Part shown: piece by piece, positions 1,940 through 14,379 of the stretch | How the letters are laid out: every line of letters starts with the position of its first letter | Position numbering within the stretch: the stretch's first letter is position 1 | DNA from: Lepidodermella squamata | Taxonomy: Eukaryota; Animalia; Gastrotricha | NCBI GenBank assembly: GCA_047495785.1 | Contig: JBLDXI010000033.1 | Span: 744,001 to 808,000, forward strand | Reading direction: 5' to 3' | DNA: 64,000 nt | The notes under the pieces: generated by a model | Told to the model about the DNA's origin: nothing | Databases searched by the model: none | Seen by the model: only the letters and a program-made list of their open reading frames with translations | Position numbers and translations under genes: made by a program

Positions 1940-3162
1940 TTAAAACGAGGTTTCTTTTACGAATTTCGCAACGAGTTGCTTTGCTGAAATGCTGCCGTCG
2001 TTTTTCAAAACAGCCCAACGCCAGAATCGGCCATGCATACTAGTCGGTATCGTGCTCAGATACTGCTGAATCTCATTCCGTGACGCTATTGGCGTAGTTT
2101 CCGGTGTAAAATCTTGCGACTTCGAGCTAGTTGCTGCCGTGTCGTCTAGCTTGGCTTGAATTTGCACGATTGGTTTTGTAGATGAGTTAGTTTCGAACTG
2201 TGATCCTGATAGAACTTGCAGTGACGGCATCGCAGTTGGCTGCCAGCTTGGCTGAGACGCGTTATTCATTCTTGATTCCATCAGCATTTTCCCGATCGTT
2301 ATCGTCGCCATTATTGCCAACGTACTTTCGAAGATGGCGAAGATTGCTATTGCGAAGTTGATTGTCTGCAGGTGCTGGTCGAACCATGACTGCTCGTTTT
2401 CCGTTGTTGTTAAGGCTTCGACATGCTTTTTGATTTCTTCTATTCGCTTCTGCTCGTCGCTTTCCTCTTGGATTTCCTTATCGGTTAGATTTGCGATTTC
2501 GCGTTTAGTTGCTTCCATTTCTTCCAGCCAGGACTGATTGTTTGTTCTTTGAAGCAGGTTATCGATTTCCTTCGTTAAGTTGTAGCTTCGGTGGCTGCCA
2601 GAAGGGCCTTTTTATTTTCCGTCGTGGTGCCTTCGCTGCACGTTTGCCCATAGAAAAAGTAGTTGGCAAGCCGTCCCAGCGCGCTTGAACACCACCATGA
2701 CTCTCTCCTAACTCTCTTCCCCTTTCGCTGAGGTTCCGCAGAGGCAAAGGTCAGGTTCTCGCTGCATTCCGGCTTGAATCGAAGGACCGTGCAGTCGGAC
2801 CGGGAGTAGCCATACTGGAACTTGCAGCCCACCGCGTCCAGTGAATCGCACCGCTTTTGGTGATCGAACGGTGGAGCGACGTGCTTTGTTTCCAGCTCTT
2901 CCCACACGTATGTTAGGTCCTTAAGTTCATCGGGTCCGTTCCAGCTAAACAGCAGCCGCAATGGAGCAGAGTCCTTGATTTCTTCCCTTATCGCCACCGG
3001 CCATCGCTCGATTTCGAACAGGATGTCTTCTTTTTCTATTGCCGTCGCCAGGATCGTTGGTAGGAAGTGGATTTTGCTCTCCGTCGAAAAGACGAAACAG
3101 ATGCAGACCATGCCAATGGAGAGCCCCTTCATTTTCGGTGTCTGCATCAGAAAATATTTCAT
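1940..3162 (-). pseudogene. env-like glycoprotein ORF split by one frameshift near 2580-2610
   Basis: Signal-like MKGLSIGMVCICFVF, Cys-containing ectodomain, RVRR furin site, then WWCSSALGRLANYFFYG. The second frame has heptad-like helices and TM segment INFAIAIFAIFESTLAIMATITIG. Confidence 0.7.
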
Positions 3163-4727
3163 TTAGTGTTTTCCTGGGTCCGTCGGAACCCTGGTTTTGG
3201 AGCGGGTGGTTAGCCCCCCCTCCCTTGCTATGATATTACTTGGGTCCACCTCCCTACGAATGTTCGCAAATTTTCCCGAGTTTTCCGGAAGTCGGCTTTG
3301 CTGAGATTGCACTTCCGGTTGAGTCGAAGGTTGAGAGACGCTCGCGCCGTCAGGTCCAGTGCTTTTGGTCAGCAGGGCAGACAAATTCTTAGCATTTACT
3401 ATCGGCTTCCCTGCGGAGATAGCCTTAGCTCGTTGTAACACCTTGTTTGCCGCCTGCTGCATGGGAGAGGGTCCACTATCCTTGTACTTCGCCGCGAGTC
3501 GATTCATGACCTCTGTTTGTGTAGCCTTAAACGGTTGTGATAGCGCAGTTGCCACCGGTGCGGGATCTTCTCGTTCCCATGCAAACTCGGGAGTACTGCT
3601 TTCTCGCTGCGCCATCGGTTCCCTTGTCGTTTGACTTGCTCCGATTGCTTCGCTCGCTGTCATTCTGGCGACTCTCTCCTCCCAGCTGACTGCTGAATTA
3701 TCGGTGGCTGGTTGGGCGGTCTCGCCTGCTGCCACCATCTCGGCGACGCTCTGCTCCCAACTTCTTTCACGATAGGGCTTGAGCCGATTTCGATGGACGA
3801 CCATTTTTGCTCCATCGTCGATGCACTCGATCTCGTAATTTCTTTCGTCCAGGATGTCCTTCACCTCACAGACTTTGGACCACAAAGCCGTGAACTTTTT
3901 CGGTTGTCCCACCGGTATTGCTGGATCGTACAGGCAAACTTTCTGACCGATTTCCAGCGGCTCGGCATTTTTCGAATTTTTGTCGTGTGCAGCTCGCTGC
4001 TTTTCCCGGGCCTTCTCGAGTTTGTCGATTGCCATTTCGTGTGCTGCTTTGAGGAACTGCCGGGTTTCCTCCGCGAATTTCTCCACCGGACGGGTCGCTG
4101 CCTGATCTTCTGTGTCGAATAGCCAGGCATCAATGCGCATAGGTGGGTTTCTTCCCATTTGGAGTTGCGCCGGGGTCATGCCGTGCGAGTCGTGCACTGA
4201 TGTGTTGTACGATCGAATTGCGTCGGGGATGAACAGATCCCAATCTTTCGGTTTGTTTTCGTCCCTTATCTTCGTGACGATGTTTTCGAGTGTCCGGTTC
4301 ATCCTTTCGATAAAGCCATTGCATTCGGGATGGTATGCTGTTGTATGGACGTGCTTCGTGCCCCATAGATTGCATACTTCTTCGACCACCTTCGCTTCGA
4401 AGTTCGTGCCTTGATCGTTCAGTAGTTGCATCGGGCTCCCCCATATGCTTACATATTCTTTCAGGCACTTGAGCACTGCTTCCGCTGTGGTTGAGCGTAG
4501 TGGATATGCCGCGATCCATTTCGTGAAGTGGTCGCCGATTAGCAGGACGTGCGTGTGTCCGCGATTCGAGGTTGGGTGTATCGGTCCCATCATGTCCCAA
4601 CAAACTAGTTCTCCCGGCGCGCTAGTCTCAATCGACTTCATCGGCGCTACCGGTTTAGGGTTTGGCGCATTCGCTTTTTGACATCGCGAACAAGTTTTCA
4701 CGTATTCTTCTGCGTCGGCTTCGTAGT
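3163..4727 (-). pseudogene. 5'-truncated pol: integrase (rve) plus C-terminal extension
   Basis: YVKTCSRC (only the CC half of HHCC). D (WDMMGP), D (NDQGTNF), then E 35 residues later (GFIERMN). VVHRNRLKPY tail. The frame begins directly after the PBS. Confidence 0.9.
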
Positions 4728-4744
4728 TCCCACCGCTGCCACCA
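4728..4744 (-). other. Primer binding site, tRNA-Leu type
   Basis: Minus strand TGGTGGCAGCGGTGGGA, 1 nt from the LTR. Complementary to the TCCCACCGCTGCCACCA 3' end of animal tRNA-Leu(AAG/TAG). Confidence 0.85.
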
Positions 4745-4745
4745 A

Positions 4746-5234
4746 TGTAACCGCTGGGTTCTTTATCCAACAAGTCAACTCTAGTGTTTCGTCTCTACGC
4801 TTTATTATCAGCAATTATTATAACTCGACTCTAGCAATGCTACTACCTGAACTACTAGCGGTGTAACAAAGCTAATGTTCATGGTGTTTATATAGTGCTG
4901 TACCAAGCTGTTGTCTTGTTAGCGCTGCCCATAAAAGGATAGATCGGATTACCATTTACGGCTTGCTTTGATCCATCGATGTTACCAAATATGGTGAGCT
5001 GTATAATTAGCTGTCGGTATCGATAATGCGAGTTGTTACCGTGTAGATTAAGCGTAGTGCGAATGATTGACAGGTGTAGGTGCGTCGGTGCCGGTGCATT
5101 GCGTAATGCACGCACTCACAAGATATGGCTAAGTACATACACACCAAGAGCGGTAATGTTATGTCATGCGTAACAAGGTGTAAGAGAGTGTATCAAAAAT
5201 ACTTAGCGCGCTGAGGTTATATTCAGCCGCTACA
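4746..5234 (-). repeat. 5' LTR
   Basis: Second copy of 183-671, adjacent to the PBS on the minus strand. Confidence 0.95.
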
Positions 5235-6105: not shown

Positions 6106-7320
6106 ATGGCGCCGCCTAAAAAAATTGAAGTAACTATTAACGTGGAAGGCACGACATTCATTTTCAAACTGACTCGCCATACGAAACTTGACATAAAAGA
6201 CATTGCCGACATAATTGCCAAATTCATTCTCAACAGTGCAAAGTCGATCTATGATGGTTTGCAGGATCCGATTTGGTACATTTCGGAAGGCTACAGAATA
6301 GCCCGCATACAACGGGGCCATCCACTGTGGGATCTGCTGGACGATGAGGCAAAGGAAACAGACCGAAACTGGTTAGTCTTCCAGAACAATCCGTTGGAAA
6401 GTAAATCAGATTTCAGCTGGAAAAACGGGAAAACCATGCAAAAATGGAGTGGTGCTGCCATTAAGGTAGTTCACTTTGGTCCGTTTGGCAAAGGAAATAA
6501 CAAAGATTACGGTAATGCTTGGGAACGTGCTCTGCAAAAATTCCTAGATGATGCAGAAGTGAAAACCCTAAAAATGAAAATAGATGCTGCCAGTTCGGTC
6601 GCTCAGAAGCAACAGGTCAAAGCAGAATACGGCGCGTACATGAAAGCGACTTATATCAAGACCAAGAATAGGCTCAATTCAGACGTCAAAAAAACCGAAG
6701 CAGAATTGACCGACATTGTTACACGTGTCTTCGGAGTAACTGAAACTGCAGCAGCTGTCACTTTAAACTTAAGCATAGCGTTGGCACCTACAGCTCTCAA
6801 AGTTAGTTCAAAGCTGCTGGTGAAGGAGACTTTTCTTATTATAACCAAGCAAATTTCCAAAGAACTGGCTGTTATCATGAGCAAACTCGCAGCCAAAGAG
6901 GGCGGAAAAGTCGCCGCCAAGAAGATTCCGGTAATTGGAGTTTTCGTGGGGGCGGGACTTAGCTATTGGAGGCTTCGCAAGGGTGACATTCGTGGAGGAA
7001 TAATGGAGATGGCAAGCGGAGTCGTCTCAATCATTCCTGCATATGGTACGGTAGGTTCGTTTGCTATCGATGGAGCTTTGGCGCTCAAAGACGTCCAAGA
7101 AGCGATCGATAGGCTGAAATATTTCCAATCTCGTACCGATAAGTTACAACAAAAGCTTGAAAAATTGATCACCAGAATAAGTGAGTTGGACGAGATGCAC
7201 AAGATGATCGAGGATGTCTTCTTTCGAGGCGACTTTGACTATGAATCACATGTGGAACAATTCGTCGATGCGTTCTATGCACTGATGATTTTCAACTCAT
7301 GGTCACAAAATTCCGGATAG
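6106..7320 (+). CDS. Uncharacterised 404-aa protein with glycine-zipper hydrophobic hairpin and coiled coil
   Basis: Long uninterrupted ORF in an AT-rich context. Motif KKIPVIGVFVGAG...GD..G..ME.ASG..S..P..GT..S..IDGAL. Acceptor-like ttttgtag directly before the ATG. Confidence 0.8.
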   Translation: MAPPKKIEVTINVEGTTFIFKLTRHTKLDIKDIADIIAKFILNSAKSIYDGLQDPIWYISEGYRIARIQRGHPLWDLLDDEAKETDRNWLVFQNNPLESKSDFSWKNGKTMQKWSGAAIKVVHFGPFGKGNNKDYGNAWERALQKFLDDAEVKTLKMKIDAASSVAQKQQVKAEYGAYMKATYIKTKNRLNSDVKKTEAELTDIVTRVFGVTETAAAVTLNLSIALAPTALKVSSKLLVKETFLIITKQISKELAVIMSKLAAKEGGKVAAKKIPVIGVFVGAGLSYWRLRKGDIRGGIMEMASGVVSIIPAYGTVGSFAIDGALALKDVQEAIDRLKYFQSRTDKLQQKLEKLITRISELDEMHKMIEDVFFRGDFDYESHVEQFVDAFYALMIFNSWSQNSG

Positions 7321-9382: not shown

Positions 9383-9957
9383 GACCGTAATGTCCCAAAG
9401 GTCATCGAAAAATGTTGCGCTATAAAAAAGTTGTGTGCATCTGAAATTTCGATTGGGTGGAATGGGTCGAATGGGTGGGGTGGTTAAAGCCCGTGATTTG
9501 ATTTCTCGAGCAGTTTTCAAGGTGATAGACTTGGCCGATTGAGATTCAACATTAGCTCTCTCGTATATTCCAAATTGGTGACTTATCATCCTCAGCCTGC
9601 TCGTAAACAGCATCACGTCATACGTACTCGGATTGGTCTTCGAACCACCAGATCCTCTGCATTTTTTGTGGGAAAATGTTGTGTTATCGAAGAGTTATCG
9701 AAGAGGCTGCAAATACTTATATAAAATAATAGCTAGAAAATCATTAAAGTTTTATGATTTTATTGATTCCGTATAATAATTGTATCTCTGGTTAACTATA
9801 TGCATTTCCTCACAAAAGTAATTTGTCTTTTGATAATTATATTTGATAATTATTGGCACTAATTTGATTTACTGTTGAGAAAATGTTCGTATTGGTCGTA
9901 AATTCCAACCTGAAAATCGGAATTTTACCAAGTTATTCAATAAAGCTTCGAAAATCA

Positions 9958-10029
9958 AGGTGACATCGAGAATCGAACTCGAGTCGCTGGATTCAGAGTC
10001 CAGAGTGCTAACCGCTACACCGCTGCGTG
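9958..10029 (-). pseudogene. tRNA-Gln(CTG) pseudogene or tRNA-derived relic
   Basis: GGTGTAGCGGTTAGCACTCTGGACTCTGAATCCAGCGACTCGAGTTCGATTCTCGA gives intact D, anticodon (CTG) and T arms. The 5' acceptor strand does not pair with the 3' TGTCACC. TTTT lies just downstream. Confidence 0.8.
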
Positions 10030-10385
10030 TGAAATTATATGCCAATGCCAGAAGAAAACAACTAAAATTAAATTTCTTAAAAACTGCGCCGAAGCAAAAA
10101 ATAGGTTTACAGGTGCAACGGTTATTCTAAAAATAGGGCTTTGAAAATAAAAATATGCCTCGCACTTGCACGTGCTTATATTTTTCGATTGTCTATAGTT
10201 CATATTTTTCCAAAAAAGGCAAATACGCTTGCTTTTTGAAATTAAAAATAGCAATGTTGACAGGAATGGGCTTGTTTTTGTTGCTATTTTTAGTGCCGAA
10301 ACTCGTGCCGAAAACTCAACTTGTGGCTATAAAAGTTGCTCGATTGCCATCTACTACATCATCAACTAATTTGAATTATCAAGCT
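10026..10385 (+). promoter_or_regulatory. Upstream/promoter region of the sHSP gene, duplicated at 65-182 plus 5239-5451
   Basis: TATAAAA at 10328-10334, about 100 bp before the ATG (copy at 5394-5400). Near-identical sequence flanks the LTR element. Confidence 0.75.
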
Positions 10386-10429
10386 TTCAAGCTATTTTTT
10401 AACTCTCGTTTCAAATCTCTCCGATTAAA

Positions 10430-12224
10430 ATGGCCTTCTCTTTCGCTAACAATGCTGGTTTCGACGGTCTCTCTGCCAAGTTCGGTCAATACAACCAAAC
10501 TGGTCTGGCTTCCTCGGCTACTACCGGCTTCGGTGGCATTAGCAACTTTGGCACTCAAATCAACAACAACGTCGCGGCCCAAATCGGTGCCAAGATCGGC
10601 CACTCAATCGGTCAAGAGTACGGTGCTCAGCTCGGTGCTGCCATCGCCGGTCACCTGAACGCCACCTTCGGAGCCGAGTGGGCAGCCCAGCTCGGAGCTG
10701 CCCACGGCGCTGAGGTCTTGGCTGAGTTGGGTGCCCAACTTGCCGTCTTCGCTGCTGCCACTGGATTCGGCGCCCAGTCGACCGCCCAACAGGGTGCCCA
10801 GTGGGGTGCTCAGGCTGGCGCCCAGTTGGCCGGTGTTCTGGCTGCCAAGCTCGGCGGACAGGCTGCTGGTGTCTTCGCCAACAACCAGGCTATCACCCAT
10901 ATCGGTGGCTCGATCTTCTCGCAGGCTGGTGCCAAGCTAGGAGCTGTCGTCGCTGCTCAGATCAACGGCGGCGACTTCGGTGCTGGTGCCAACATCACTG
11001 GCAACTTCGGCAGCTTCAACGCCCTCAACAACGGTCTATTCGGCGGCCTGAACGGCTACAACGCCGGCCTTTTCGGTGCCAACCACCTCAACAACTTTGG
11101 TGGCGTTTTCGGCGGTAACGTCAACCACTTGGCTGGCGCCTACAACAACGGTCTGTTCGGTGGTGCCAACAACAACTTCGCCAACAACTTCTCTGGCCCC
11201 TTCGGTGGCAACGCTACCTTCAACGGTCAGCTCTCTGGCAACTTCGGCGCCAACACCCTCGGCGGTCTCTTCGGTGGTGCCAACCTCGCCAACCAGGCTG
11301 GTCTCTTCGGTGGTGTTTTCGGCAGTAACGTCAACCACTTGGCTGGCGCCTACAGCAACGGTCTCTTCGGTGGTGCCAACAACAACTTCTCTGGCCTCTT
11401 CGGTGACAACGCTGCCTTGAATGGCAACTTCTCGAGCAACTTTGGCGCCAACACCTTCGGTGGCCTCTTCGGTGGTGCCAACAACAACTTTGGCAACTTC
11501 TCTGGCCTCTTCGGTGGTAACACTGCCTTCAACGGCCAGTTCTCTGGTAACCAACTGAACACCTTCGGCGGTCTCTTCGGCGATGCGAACTTCGCCAACC
11601 AGGCTGGTACCTTCGGTGGAAACTTCAACGGTCACCTGAACTCCCACTCGGCTGCTGACCAGCTGTACAACATCGCCTTCCGCCCGTCCAGCCAGGCCGA
11701 GCTCTACACTCTGACCAACCCGGTGCAGTACGTCAACAACCAAGGCAAGCGCCAGCTGTTCCTCGCCTTCGAGCTCAAGGGCTTCAAGCCTGAGGAAGTC
11801 ACCGTCACCCTGAACAAGGCCGAGCGCGCCGTCGTCGTCGAGGCTGCCTACGAGGCCAAGGACGGCAAGGAGCACACCGTCGCCCGCAAGTACTCGCGCA
11901 AGTTCGTCCTGCCCGAGGTGAGACTTTGATAAAACTGACCTATAAATAACCTTAATTTTCCGATTATTCAAGACTCTCGCCAAGGTCGACCTGGCCAAGG
12001 TTGAGCTCACCTCGCAACTGAATGCCGATGGCTACTTGTTCGTCCAAGCCGAGCTGCCTCAGTTGACCACCGAAGAGATCGCCAAGCTGCCGTTGTCTCA
12101 CAACCACCTCAACCAGATCGCTTTCAAAAAGACCCACAGCAGCGCCCTGTACGGCAACAACAACAACAACGTTTTCGCCCACCTCGCCAACAACGTTACG
12201 CCTGTTACTGTCAAGTCCGCCTAA
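10430..12224 (+). CDS. Small heat-shock (HSP20/alpha-crystallin) protein with long Gly/Ala and GLFG/Asn-rich N-terminus; exons 10430-11917, 11973-12224
   Basis: Spliced alpha-crystallin domain FELKGFKPEEVTV...RKYSRKFVLPE|TLAKVD...TSQLNADGYLFVQAELP. 55-nt GT-AG intron. Strong C-ending codon bias. Confidence 0.9.
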
Positions 12225-12510
12225 ACTTACCGTCGGATGCCGAAAACCCTTGAAAACTTGAATAACTTCTGATGATTTGAAATCATCGTTAATTTATAGT
12301 GATATCTCGTGATCAAAAATGTTATTGCCTCTGTCCTAATAAATTCTGCGTTTTCGGCATCATACTGCGTTCTCTGGCTCACTAAAAAATCCTGGAAATA
12401 TATAAAATTAATAATTAAGATTGGGGCTAAAATTTCCATTTATTATTATTTTCAAATTTTTTTTTTTAGTAAACCGATTTTCTGGCAGAAAAAGCTGAAA
12501 ATTTGATTTT

Positions 12511-14379
12511 TTAAAACACACTGACTGGCAAATAATTGTATCTCTTTTCGTCAGCTTGAATCAAGTCTTTCCGAGTCCAATAGGTCTGCGATACCAGCCA
12601 TAAATAAGCACTCAAAATTGCGATGGCATATCTGAAATAAGTAAAATGAATTATTCATGGACCCACTCAAATGAATCACTCACATTGTTAGGAAGGCGTT
12701 ATTAAGGAGTTCATGAAGATTACGGCATCCCTTTGCATTTCCACAACCTGGGTTACCGCCCTTTTCCGCCAAATTCCTGTTTCGATTCCGCGTCTCGATC
12801 CGTTGTAAATTGCAATTGGGATTCGAATTTCGTTCGTAGAGCGTGCTGTTATTGTTGTTATTCACAAGCGGCAATAAGGCTGAACTGCCTCGTTTTATGC
12901 TTAAGGCTCTAGCTTGGATAACAGCGGGGTGTTTGCTCGCCAACCTGACGACAATCGCGCAAACAATGCTGCCGAAAATTCCCATTGCGATGATGATGAC
13001 ATAGAAAATGGTCAGAATTGGAATGTTATCGCTAGCCTGGGGCGTAACTTCGATCAAACTGAGCATTAGTAAGAAGTAAGCCAGAATTCCTGTCAGAATC
13101 GTCTGCAATTTCTCGGTCGAATGGCTCGGCAGTACAAAGGCTAGAATGGTTGAGATCGAAATAAGGAATGTTGGCACAATCAGGGTCCAAATGTAGTAAT
13201 TAGGCTGGCGTTCCATTCGAAACCAAATTTCGATGCCGGATATGTTTGACTGGGATCGGCGGGCCATCTGCCCCGTTATCATCCATAGCGGGTGAGAGAC
13301 ATTTTCGTTCCAAAGGAGTAGGGCCTGATCGAGTCCGTAAACAAAATATTGCAATTCATGGATCAGGTAATGCGGCGATCGTAGCATTATGTGACAATTC
13401 TGAAAAAAATAAAAAAATATTCCATCTCAATAATTTGAAAACAATATTAAAATTTGAAAAATAAGTAAAAATGGGGAAAATTTGTAAAAAAAAATAGTCC
13501 ATTAACCTGATGGTCCCAAGGAAAATTTCGCATATTTTCAGACATCGGACACTGCGAATTAAAATAAAAATAAAAAATTTAAATAGACGAAAATTTATCA
13601 AACTTGCATTAATCTCGATTCGAAAGCTCGTTATCCAGGTGATGACGCTGCGATTATGGACGACGATGGGAAATTTTTCCCACGCTTCGGTATACAGCGT
13701 TTTTTCAGCGCTGTTTTCAATCGTCCACAGTGGAAACCAAAGGTATTTATCGAATTGAGGCACTGTATAAGACATTTCGGCACAATCTTCCCCGGACGCT
13801 TTCAGCAAACGACGATCGCGCCAGCTTGAATGAGCGAGGAAGAAAAATATCAAAATAAAAAAATTGAAAATATTAAATGATCAAAATTAATTAATTTAAT
13901 AACATATTAAATTATTATATTATGAATAAAAGATGCGAACCTCATTTCGAAAAACGCGCTCAAGGTCAAAGTTTGATCTCGCTCGTTAACTAATAAAAAT
14001 TTCGAAAAATTATGACTCATAAATTTATTGACCTACTTTTACCTTGGTAAATATTGGTGATTATAACCATCACGCTGACTTTCACTGGTAAATCAGGAGG
14101 ACTCTTTGTTAGCATGAATTTGTTCTTTTCGAGGTAATTCGCGAACGCGAGATGGCAGCGTTCGACGTTTTTTAGCCGAGCCTGTTGCTTCGTTGTTATC
14201 TCGGAATAATCAGCAAACGGCATGTAGCCCTCGGCGAACTGATTTTCGAAGGCTTCCTCGGCCGCCGCGTCCCATGTGCCCTGCGACATGACCCGGCCGA
14301 ACCTGCCCGGCAGGGCGCAGGTGGCCAGCATCAAGGTGAGCACCGACGAGCAGAGTAGCGTATGTACCGAAAAAAGCAT
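12511..14379 (-). CDS. Divergent Cys-loop ligand-gated ion channel subunit (subfamily A, no.1)
   Basis: Signal peptide, WRDRRL, WFPLW, Cys-loop CPMSENMRNFPWDHQ|NC, ERQPNYY-M1, EK-M2, M3, M4. Multi-exon. Confidence 0.9.

Follow-up and report, generated by a model that had tools for sequence, protein, structure and literature searches.

A small heat-shock protein of Lepidodermella squamata with a nearly uncharged GLFG/Asn-rich N-terminal extension

Gene Structure and Transcription

The window analyzed in this study is a 64,000-nucleotide stretch of a Lepidodermella squamata contig (JBLDXI010000033.1, positions 744,001 to 808,000). A two-exon gene with a 579 aa product was delineated on its + strand from the open reading frame and the splice sites.

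10328..10335, + strand: TATA-like box TATAAAAG, about 100 nt 5′ of the ATG; putative promoter element, judged by its sequence
10430..11917, + strand: exon 1 coding sequence, 496 codons; N-terminal extension and first two thirds of the alpha-crystallin domain
11918..11972, + strand: intron, 55 nt, GT..AG; splice donor GTGAGA at 11918
11973..12224, + strand: exon 2 coding sequence, 83 codons plus TAA
12338..12343, + strand: poly(A) signal AATAAA, read from the sequence

An in-frame TAA lies upstream of the ATG at 10400-10402. The exon junction (11917 to 11973) is exact in one public cDNA contig (run X3), both exons tile the alignment of relatives described below (A2) without gap or overlap, and the mRNA-like relative L001 is uninterrupted at the intron position. 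In 12 contigs of another cDNA run (X2), position 11917 is continuous with paralogous exon-2 sequence. Run X2, which carries a loose end that we take to be the SMART cDNA-synthesis primer, yielded contigs over exon 1 (10427-11798) that cover the repeat region, beginning 3 nt 5′ of the ATG. Its coverage is limited to 10427-12316, with a depth of 88 in bin 12250-12343, 0 past that bin and zero in both flanks, whereas the DNA run X1 covers everything, flanks included. Both splicing and transcription across the repeats are shown for this gene. Transcripts starting downstream of the repeats had been named in the original prediction as one finding that would overturn it; because the cDNA contigs cover the repeat region from 10427 onward, this objection fails. 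Several contigs of the N-terminal part differ by 4-7% from the window, so their source may be an allele or a close paralog, and a difference-free match was found only over 11488-11689.

A decaying or mis-modeled gene was also considered, with the repeat region untranslated or the open reading frame fortuitous. Nothing beyond the low complexity of the sequence speaks for it. The frame is intact over 579 codons with the in-frame stop just 5′ of the ATG, extreme codon bias runs throughout, the cDNA contigs begin at 10427 and the splice junction is exact. Moreover, the variants shown comprise 16 synonymous and 15 non-synonymous changes though the sites stand at about 1:3, which amounts to a synonymous excess. 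This reading is effectively refuted.

The effective number of codons (ENC) was 31.6, versus 54-66 in seven neighboring ORFs, and GC3 was 0.74-0.81 versus 0.46-0.57; AAC accounts for 72 of 75 Asn codons and TTC for 48 of 52 Phe codons. Such bias had originally been taken as a sign of high expression. The bias itself was confirmed, but very high expression is evident for the gene family, not for this copy: cDNA-run word depth was modest over the gene's own N-terminal part (~15-460) and reached 1e4-3e5 in the crystallin-domain bins, so the latter must stem from paralogs, and expression is in any case poorly gauged by contig depth. Heat-shock-element dimers (GAAnnTTC or TTCnnGAA) were absent from 9700-10430, the 730 nt upstream. 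The absence of these elements, together with the strong codon bias, suggests constitutive or developmental expression rather than heat induction.

The Alpha-Crystallin Core and Its Family

11681..11917, + strand: pre-ACD motif (FRP ... NP) and alpha-crystallin domain part 1, through the R-K-F-x-L-P-E strand (Pfam HSP20, alignment A2)
11973..12062, + strand: alpha-crystallin domain part 2 (D-L-x-K-x-E-L ... D-G-x-L ... L-P) (alignment A2)
12063..12224, + strand: C-terminal extension, with V-T-V at 12204-12212 (P-V-T-V-K-S-A, then stop)

The crystallin domain was analyzed as two separate exon pieces. Pfam HSP20 (PF00011) matched exon-1 residues 444-496 with 27.6 bits against a cut-off of 20.8, for the ACD piece alone, and the same model matched 21 of the 23 members of the alignment. 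Family-conserved sequence begins at about residue 418, so that ~410-440 aa precede the domain, in agreement with the ~410 aa given in the original prediction. The A2 profile matched HSPB1 (E = 6.5e-12) and also Sip1, Tsp36, and alphaB-crystallin (1e-10 to 1e-12). The R..R-K-F-x-L-P-E closing exon 1 and the D-G-Y-L ... L-P in exon 2 are near-invariant in A2 and align with HSPB1; in the exon-2 part, the near-invariant columns are D, K, E, G, E, L, and P. The R-K-F-x-L-P strand (beta6+7, with its conserved Arg) is the dimer interface of metazoan small heat-shock proteins (sHSPs). At the C-terminus, V-T-V occupies the position where the sHSP I-x-I anchoring motif sits, and a motif of the [I/V]-x-[I/V] type was found at the same place in all 21 aligned relatives, the last hydrophobic residue being C or T in five. 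On these features the protein is assigned to the sHSP family, with a crystallin domain of the metazoan type.

An exhaustive search of 1.84 billion proteins returned ~38 relatives, all matching through the crystallin domain; in a few cases the alignment also includes the C-terminal portion of the FG region described below. Apart from the crystallin clade, the search matched just three simple repeats. The relatives are environmental mRNA-like contigs (JGI, Logan) with diverse, uncharged, low-complexity N-termini. Those aligned in A2 (21 relatives) are 37-56% identical over the exon-1 part, with search E-values of 1e-27 to 1e-10, and P0002-P0031 show 40-57% identity over the crystallin domain and the same codon bias. 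The signature of the clade, FRP...NP(I/V)...GNR...KPEE...KEH...R..RK(F/Y).LP...DL.K.ELKS...G.L..E..LP plus terminal [IV]x[IV]K, is present in the protein described here, which shares with the clade the FRP, NPI, GNR, KPEE, KEH, and RKF.LP motifs, the terminal motif, the codon bias and an uncharged low-complexity N-terminus. In contrast, the clade members are shorter (110-373 aa for P0002-P0031, versus 579 aa) and many are Cys-rich or Met/His-rich. The original prediction had proposed a homologue search for the same architecture, and none was recovered: neither GLFG nor a Gly/Ala domain occurs in any of the ~38 relatives, some of which carry FG repeats of the "STFGGN" type.

In sister proteins, Pro/Thr-rich or Met/His-rich N-termini stand in place of FG, so FG itself is not a conserved feature; other N-termini are Cys-rich or uncharged and aromatic-rich. 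The FG region is similar to the N-termini of 'NTFGG' type in sister sHSPs, one of which aligns with it (BLASTP E = 2e-5, with compositional adjustment), and this likeness argues for growth within the sHSP family. At an identity of at least 88%, 1608 cDNA and 195 genomic contigs matched the gene, with a depth peak over the crystallin domain, and tblastn with four protein parts found no paralogs in the 64-kb window. The gene belongs to a clade of metazoan-type sHSPs that is multi-copy and lineage-restricted. A word-index search gave 8000 low-complexity candidates for the whole of exon 1 and 39 for the crystallin part only, none of them significant; because of its length filter (273-868 aa), it missed the shorter relatives that came up in the exhaustive search.

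The N-Terminal Head and the Gly/Ala Domain

10430..10561, + strand: N-terminal head, aa 1-44, three FG motifs and no signal peptide in the translation
10562..10981, + strand: Gly/Ala domain, aa 45-184 (140 aa), four ~35-aa repeats (alignment A1)

The peak Kyte-Doolittle value of a 19-residue window across exon 1 was 1.44, giving no evident hydrophobic signal or transmembrane segment, and because a signal peptide is lacking the product was taken as cytosolic. The GAxxGAxxG segment of the original prediction is present at aa 45-184. That this segment forms a domain of its own had been missed there, as had the multi-copy family of the gene. The repeat unit is of four residues (G, A, polar, hydrophobic), and each of the four longer repeats terminates in F-G or F-A. 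The repeats are 38-48% identical to repeat 1, with seven invariant columns (A1). Small residues are periodic, with z = 5.8 at lag 4 and 4.2 at lag 8, and hydrophobic residues likewise, with z = 3.7 at both lags. AlphaFold single-sequence models of the domain were helical at low confidence (pLDDT 50-58; 58 when modeled alone), and amphipathic beta strands would fit the period of four and the larger 170-degree hydrophobic moments equally well.

In Pfam, nothing matched the Gly/Ala domain with E < 0.07. The ESM Atlas feature search gave no usable match for either this domain or the FG domain, and the exhaustive search of 1.84 billion proteins returned only simple GAxVGAxV repeats as matches to the former. 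P0035, P0037, and P0039 (E = 3e-5 to 5e-4) were rejected as relatives, being simple repeats of this type. The Gly/Ala segment is a separate four-repeat domain without detectable relatives.

Because the domain contains 10 GxxxG, 4 GxxxGxxxG, and 34 small-xxx-small-xxx-small motifs in 140 aa, it might be thought of as a membrane-inserting or membrane-coating glycine-zipper, in the manner of lipid-associated bacterial and plant sHSPs. However, the top hydropathy of 1.44 is below the usual transmembrane threshold, every fourth position is taken by Gln or other polar residues, and no Pfam glycine-zipper family matched. A membrane-active protein is considered very improbable.

The FG/GLFG Domain

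11000..11659, + strand: FG/GLFG-Asn domain, aa 191-410 (220 aa), 21 FG including 10 GLFG
11095..11389, + strand: recent internal duplication, 85-nt copies at 11095-11179 and 11305-11389, 94% identical

The FG domain contains 55 Gly, 48 Asn, 32 Phe, 25 Ala, and 21 Leu (25% Gly, 22% Asn, and 15% Phe). Set against prion-like domains, which are Q/N-rich and uncharged, Asn and Gln together make up 24% here, but alongside the Phe and 10% Leu. Its only charged residues are three Asp (1.4%); K, R, E, I, M, W, and C are absent, and hydrophobic residues other than F and L comprise just four Val and three Tyr. FG density is 9.5 per 100 residues, with 27 FG in the whole of exon 1. An sHSP with a GLFG/Asn-rich, charge-free N-terminal extension, as originally described, was borne out by the 10 GLFG and the three charged residues in 220. 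Residue shuffles gave means of 0.19 GLFG and 8.0 FG, and the observed counts were reached in none of 20,000. None of 3000 shuffles spaced the aromatic residues as evenly as the observed sequence does (z = -3.6). In AlphaFold, the domain was disordered (pLDDT 25-40), and the single-sequence model of the whole of exon 1 had a pLDDT of 42. The internal duplications of the original prediction were also recovered: the 85-nt copies, spaced 210 nt (70 aa), form repeat family D4, there are further repeat families of 103 nt and 84 nt, and families D1 and D5 add more copies.

[quoted passage not shown] By its composition, the FG domain described here conforms to the published rules for cohesive Nup98 FG domains, and this agreement is to be read as a likeness in possible working, not as nucleoporin membership. 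An Asn-rich FG sequence could also form an amyloid-like solid instead of a reversible phase.

A further possibility is that the protein is linked to nuclear pores, as the original prediction had offered, or to transport receptors. By binding importins or exportins, its GLFG motifs would then anchor the chaperone at pores or at perinuclear granules; FG repeats of C. elegans GLH helicases reportedly act in a comparable way at P granules. Nuclear transport receptors bind the GLFG motif, and the density of FG is in line with that of Nup98 (PMC8245513, PMC9918544). However, Pfam Nucleoporin_FG gave only 8.8 bits (E = 4.1) against a cut-off of 32.2, and HSP20 was the sole significant Pfam match, so no nucleoporin domain was detected. 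Neither a GLEBS segment nor a C-terminal autoproteolytic/NPC-anchoring domain was detected by Pfam in the protein, whose C-terminus is the crystallin domain. Moreover, nucleoporin-like proteins were absent from the best 14 hits of the exhaustive search, the FG region is like the N-termini of sister sHSPs, and in sister proteins it is swapped for other low-complexity sequence. A nuclear-pore-associated sHSP is unsupported by these results and we regard it as improbable. The likeness to Nup98, Nup100, and Nup116 comprises GLFG, ~8-10 FG per 100 residues, near-zero charge and hydrophobics that are essentially Phe and Leu, whereas the score far under the Pfam cut-off and the fusion to a chaperone domain set the protein apart from them. 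The resemblance would most simply be convergent.

Discussion

Low-complexity-extended sHSPs such as Hsp42 and HSP48 are current models for chaperone-organized deposits and condensates. In yeast Hsp42, the prion-like N-terminal extension drives oligomerization, multivalent binding and the formation of deposits that sequester proteins (PMC5881514, PMC13287201). The protein described here resembles Hsp42 in having an alpha-crystallin core behind a long, low-complexity, largely uncharged N-terminal extension. It is not an orthologue, however: the closest solved structures to its crystallin domain are metazoan HSPB1, Sip1, and Tsp36, and those of the relatives examined that carry a crystallin domain all fall in the environmental clade distinct from Hsp42. 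Its extension is Phe/Gly/Asn-based with GLFG and Gly/Ala repeats, and its activity is a prediction. Dictyostelium HSP48, another alpha-crystallin-domain protein with a disordered low-complexity region, forms condensates through that region and is developmentally regulated, not heat-induced (PMC6584373). In HSP48 the region is C-terminal, highly basic and polyphosphate-dependent, whereas here it is N-terminal, uncharged and aromatic. A literature search found no paper in which FG repeats are combined with a crystallin domain; nucleoporins and FG repeats both go unmentioned in a 2026 review on sHSPs and condensates.

We favor, with moderate confidence, a self-assembling sHSP that forms a gel or condensate and serves as a sequestrase or as bulk material. 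The usual short, aromatic N-terminal region of sHSPs would have grown to ~410 residues. Crystallin-domain dimers would be joined into oligomers through the C-terminal motif, each subunit presenting ~21 Phe stickers at even intervals among uncharged Gly/Asn spacers. Cohesion of these stickers between oligomers would produce a dense gel or condensate-like phase, and the Gly/Ala tetrad-repeat domain may contribute another surface for self-association. Non-native proteins would be retained or sequestered in this phase, much as Hsp42 sequesters them by means of its prion-like domain, or the phase would alternatively serve as bulk protective or structural material of the cytoplasm. The engineered Nup98-derived domains carry 52 GLFG repeats (PMC8245513, PMC9918544), versus 21 FG here, so their behavior cannot be carried over directly to this protein. 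Of the original suggestions, the condensate- or gel-forming chaperone and the structural protein both fit the chemistry of the FG domain as judged by its composition.

In a purely structural protein, the crystallin domain would be an oligomerization module only and the low-complexity domains would form a solid inside the cell, perhaps in eggs, epidermis or muscle. Lens alpha-crystallins and the sperm-tail sHSP relative ODF1/HSPB10, with its extension of short Cys-Gly-Pro repeats, are sHSP-family proteins that serve as abundant structural material; they differ from the present case in repeat chemistry and position and in their vertebrate-specific roles. The multi-copy family with its very high summed cDNA depth, the strong codon bias and the lack of heat-shock elements are consistent with a structural role. 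So are the silk- or keratin-like Gly-rich composition, together with a Gly/Ala domain whose period of four would allow beta-sheet packing, and the Cys-rich, Pro/Ser/Thr/aromatic N-termini of relatives, which are suggestive of cross-linked material. On the other hand, this copy has zero Cys and no signal peptide, and every conserved sHSP feature is kept. We consider a purely structural protein possible but rather unlikely, and the boundary between it and the self-assembling sHSP is a matter of degree.

Whichever use a self-assembled phase might have, the natural fusion of an sHSP core to a domain following the Nup98 rules would offer a ready-made test of FG cohesion for proteostasis or as cytoplasmic material, and it comes from Gastrotricha, a phylum on which hardly any molecular biology exists. 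A bolder form of the self-assembling sHSP, which we put forward as speculative and unlikely, is that a Nup98-like cohesive FG phase evolved independently outside the nuclear pore, fused to an sHSP, as a Gly/Ala-reinforced cytoplasmic chaperone gel with selective permeability, perhaps for egg dormancy or desiccation protection. If so, the gel would admit hydrophobic-surfaced or unfolded clients and keep out inert proteins, and the Gly/Ala reinforcement would be a previously undescribed tetrad-periodic self-association domain.

Gene model and transcription

The window, a stretch of eukaryotic DNA, has a G+C content of about 40% (43% is reported for Lepidodermella squamata; PMC11660948), and 10001-12000 is conspicuous at 54%. 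The following features of the small heat-shock protein (sHSP) gene were read from the sequence:

10328: TATAAAAG, a TATA-like box upstream of the ATG
10430 to the GTGAGA donor at 11918, + strand: exon 1 open reading frame, beginning with ATG
11918-11972, + strand: intron of 55 nt, ending in AG
11973 onward, + strand: exon 2, in the same frame, with TAA at 12222-12224
12338-12343: AATAAA, in agreement with the 3′ end of the X2 cDNA coverage

The product has 579 residues (496 + 83), and an in-frame TAA lies 30 nt 5′ of the ATG. Four public sequencing runs were compared with 9900-12700. Run X1 showed depth in every bin, flanks included, and is therefore genomic DNA. The depth of run X2 was zero 5′ of bin 10370-10463 and zero beyond 12343; this confinement to the gene, together with a loose end that resembles a SMART cDNA-synthesis primer, indicates that X2 is cDNA. 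X2 contigs covered 10427-10698, 10709-10966, 11028-11136, 11192-11389, 11488-11689 (without any difference from the window), 11661-11798 and 11980-12316. The original prediction would have been refuted by transcripts that start downstream and leave the repeats untranslated; the cDNA contigs, which reach 10427, before the ATG, speak against such transcripts. Two reservations apply: contigs do not define a transcription start, and several of the N-terminal X2 contigs, which were 4-7% different from the window, could represent another allele or a closely related paralog. In one contig of run X3, 11917 was joined exactly to 11973 (GT..AG), and twelve X2 contigs passed from 11917 directly into exon-2 sequence of a paralog.

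The codon bias that had been noted was confirmed and is strong, with an ENC of 31.6 versus 54-66 for seven neighbouring open reading frames. No heat-shock-element dimers (GAAnnTTC or TTCnnGAA) were found in the 730 nt upstream. Taken with the codon bias, this absence suggests constitutive or developmental expression. Variant positions from the read tool in the coding region were synonymous in 16 cases and not in 15, with mostly conservative replacements, which mildly supports purifying selection over the entire coding region, the variants mixing alleles and paralogs. It is very unlikely that the gene is an artefact or a dead gene.

A multi-copy family with a metazoan-type crystallin domain

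At 88% identity or more, 1608 contigs in X2 and 195 in X1 matched the gene stretch. Summed depth, which represents neither copy number nor expression level, was 15-30 times that of the flanks in the crystallin-domain bins of X1, and in X2 it was 1e4-3e5 in these bins versus roughly 40-460 over the N-terminal part. These depths are taken to show only that paralogs with highly similar crystallin domains are numerous and that some are abundantly transcribed. No paralogs were found within the 64-kb window, and the gene is one dispersed member of a multi-copy family, here beside a Cys-loop receptor array.

Searches and fold models treated the exons one at a time. Pfam HSP20 matched the exon-1 part with 27.6 bits (curated cut-off 20.8). 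When exon 1 was compared exhaustively by HMMER with 1.84 billion representatives, 43 proteins had E ≤ 0.001, none below 1e-30. About 38 of them matched through residues ~405-496 with 40-57% identity; in P0005, P0006, P0009, P0028 and P0031 the alignment also took in C-terminal residues of the FG region. The suggested search for homologues of the same architecture succeeded for the crystallin domain, and failed for GLFG repeats and the Gly/Ala domain, which were absent from all crystallin-clade relatives compared. The ten relatives examined were each a complete open reading frame; their contigs, ~0.9-1.5 kb long, stem from environmental samples (JGI) and from Logan assemblies. The full contigs L001 and L002 had short UTRs, favoured C-ending codons alike and were uninterrupted at the intron position of the window gene; L004 and L005, complete open reading frames with short flanks, had the same layout. 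These contigs look like environmental mRNAs.

In an alignment of the crystallin-domain family (21 relatives), the two exons tiled the family with zero gap and zero overlap, providing independent support for the splice model. Conserved landmarks were FRP, NP(I/V), GNR, KPEE, KEH, R..RK(F/Y).LP, DL.K.ELKS and G.L..E..LP, and the extreme C-terminus carried an [I/V]-x-[I/V]-K motif (P-V-T-V-K-S-A in the window gene). C-terminal [I/V]-x-[I/V] is the anchoring motif of sHSPs. The alignment profile matched HSPB1 (6.5e-12), C. elegans Sip1, tapeworm Tsp36 and alphaB-crystallin. By these sequence features, the product is an sHSP of the metazoan type that has kept its oligomerisation elements.

Two relatives, P0001 (373 aa) and P0042 (416 aa), had two crystallin domains, a layout that occurs in tapeworm Tsp36 and the schistosome p40 egg antigen. 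The domains of P0001 bear the clade motifs; P0042 (E = 9e-4), in which several of these motifs are missing, seems to be an sHSP that is more distantly related. In the JGI contig L001 (P0044, 423 aa), ~225 nt of the crystallin domain were in tandem compared with 348-aa cluster mates, and '...KMTTEEI' led directly back into 'TVTLNKAEK...'. L001 probably arose as a chimera when two near-identical transcripts were assembled together, and would not encode a true two-domain protein.

The FG region

The stretch of about 200 nearly charge-free residues that had been noted was borne out at aa 191-410: these 220 residues (G55, N48, F32, A25, L21) include only three charged ones and exactly ten GLFG. FG occurred 21 times here and 27 times in exon 1. 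Residue shuffles gave means of 0.19 GLFG and 8.0 FG, with 0 of 20,000 attaining the observed counts, and none of 3000 shuffles spaced the aromatic residues as evenly (z = -3.6). AlphaFold pLDDT was 25-40, and the region is predicted to be disordered.

With 9.5 FG per 100 residues, 1.4% charged residues and only 4 Val and 3 Tyr as other hydrophobics, the region resembles cohesive Nup98-type FG domains, a likeness by composition only. For Nup98, PMC8245513 lists as invariant features some 8 FG per 100 residues and a strong bias against charged residues and against hydrophobics besides Phe and Leu. The mean FG repeat is ~10.5 residues; shortening FG spacers by a single residue brings a three- to five-fold drop in saturation concentration (PMC9918544). 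The likeness did not extend to the nucleoporin family: the Pfam nucleoporin FG model scored 8.8 bits against a cut-off of 32.2, no nucleoporin domain was detected, and HSP20 was the sole significant Pfam match. Judged by its sequence, the protein falls outside that family, and binding to nuclear-pore or transport receptors, which has the composition on its side, is very unlikely.

The relatives (110-373 aa) had N-termini that were all low-complexity and charge-poor, yet widely different: rich in Pro/Ser/Thr with Tyr/Trp/Phe and often Cys; Met/His-rich, up to 48% M+H; or with 'STFGGN'-type FG repeats (P0005, P0006, P0009, P0031). With compositional adjustment, the FG region aligned with the N-terminus of P0005 (E = 2e-5) and not significantly with that of P0031. 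Internal duplications, also noted at first, are still visible in the DNA as 85-nt copies, 94% identical and 210 nt apart. Given the P0005 alignment, the region most likely grew inside the sHSP clade, through these duplications, and would not have been borrowed from a nucleoporin.

In P0014, P0017 and P0024, the same crystallin domain follows Met/His-rich N-termini (18-48% Met+His) that replace the aromatic repeats. We know of no description of this composition for sHSPs; such N-termini might bind metals or scavenge oxidants.

The Gly/Ala domain

The Gly/Ala segment noted before the crystallin domain is present at aa 45-184, as four aligned repeats of ~35 residues each, built of a 4-residue unit of Gly, Ala, a polar residue and Leu/Ile/Val. 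Small residues show periodicity at lags of 4 and 8, as do hydrophobic ones (z up to 5.8). The domain had no Pfam match (best E = 0.075), zero Atlas neighbours and no relatives in the HMMER search of 1.84 billion representatives; three matches to the region were rejected as relatives, being simple GAxVGAxV repeats only. Single-sequence AlphaFold models were helical with low confidence. The period is exactly four, and hydrophobic moments are larger for the beta type; amphipathic beta strands would suit both features as well as a helix does. Ten GxxxG motifs give the domain a glycine-zipper-like character, and its hydropathy peaks at 1.44, under the transmembrane range; membrane activity is accordingly a slight prospect.

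A possible condensate-forming chaperone

The gene is transcribed. Its product keeps an intact sHSP core of metazoan type along with the anchoring motif at the C-terminus, and has an N-terminal domain composed like cohesive FG domains. The product was taken as cytosolic because it has no signal peptide. Crystallin dimers, linked through the C-terminal motif, would build oligomers each displaying many FG domains. Phe-mediated cohesion between oligomers, aided by the Gly/Ala domain, would make the protein condense, as a gel or a condensate-like phase, and this phase may sequester non-native proteins or act as bulk cytoplasmic material. Precedents for such a mechanism are Hsp42, in which sequestration is driven by a prion-like N-terminal domain (PMC5881514, PMC13287201), and Dictyostelium HSP48, a condensate-forming crystallin-domain protein induced developmentally, not by heat (PMC6584373). 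That the protein is purely structural material is rather unlikely.

In the literature, neither a crystallin domain combined with FG or GLFG repeats nor gastrotrich sHSPs were found. Heat-shock proteins and crystallins are unmentioned in the 2024 L. squamata sequencing paper (PMC11660948), and a 2026 review on sHSPs in condensates refers neither to nucleoporins nor to FG repeats. sHSPs with a low-complexity extension for self-association are an already known kind; what is new in this gene is its GLFG chemistry, together with its Gly/Ala domain.

Surroundings of the gene

Directly 5′ of the gene, an Rfam tRNA match was observed at 9966-10021 (-) with 39.8 bits, covering model positions 9-63 only, where ARAGORN makes no call. 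X1 summed depth at this site was ~26,000 versus ~130 in the flanks, and the run of an unrelated organism matched too, which points to a tRNA-derived repeat or a tRNA gene fragment present in many copies. At 3163-4773 (-), a 536-aa open reading frame with retroviral-type integrase core domains (rve, 1.6e-11) is a retrotransposon remnant within G+C-rich 2001-4000. A 404-aa open reading frame at 6106-7320 (+) has no Pfam match; its C-terminal half contains Gly/Ala/Ile-rich hydrophobic segments like glycine-zipper membrane helices, then a coiled-coil-like tail. Downstream, the sHSP gene is adjoined by an array of Cys-loop ligand-gated channel gene fragments at 12680-35252, of which 12680-13387 matches Neur_chan_memb (7.3e-9).
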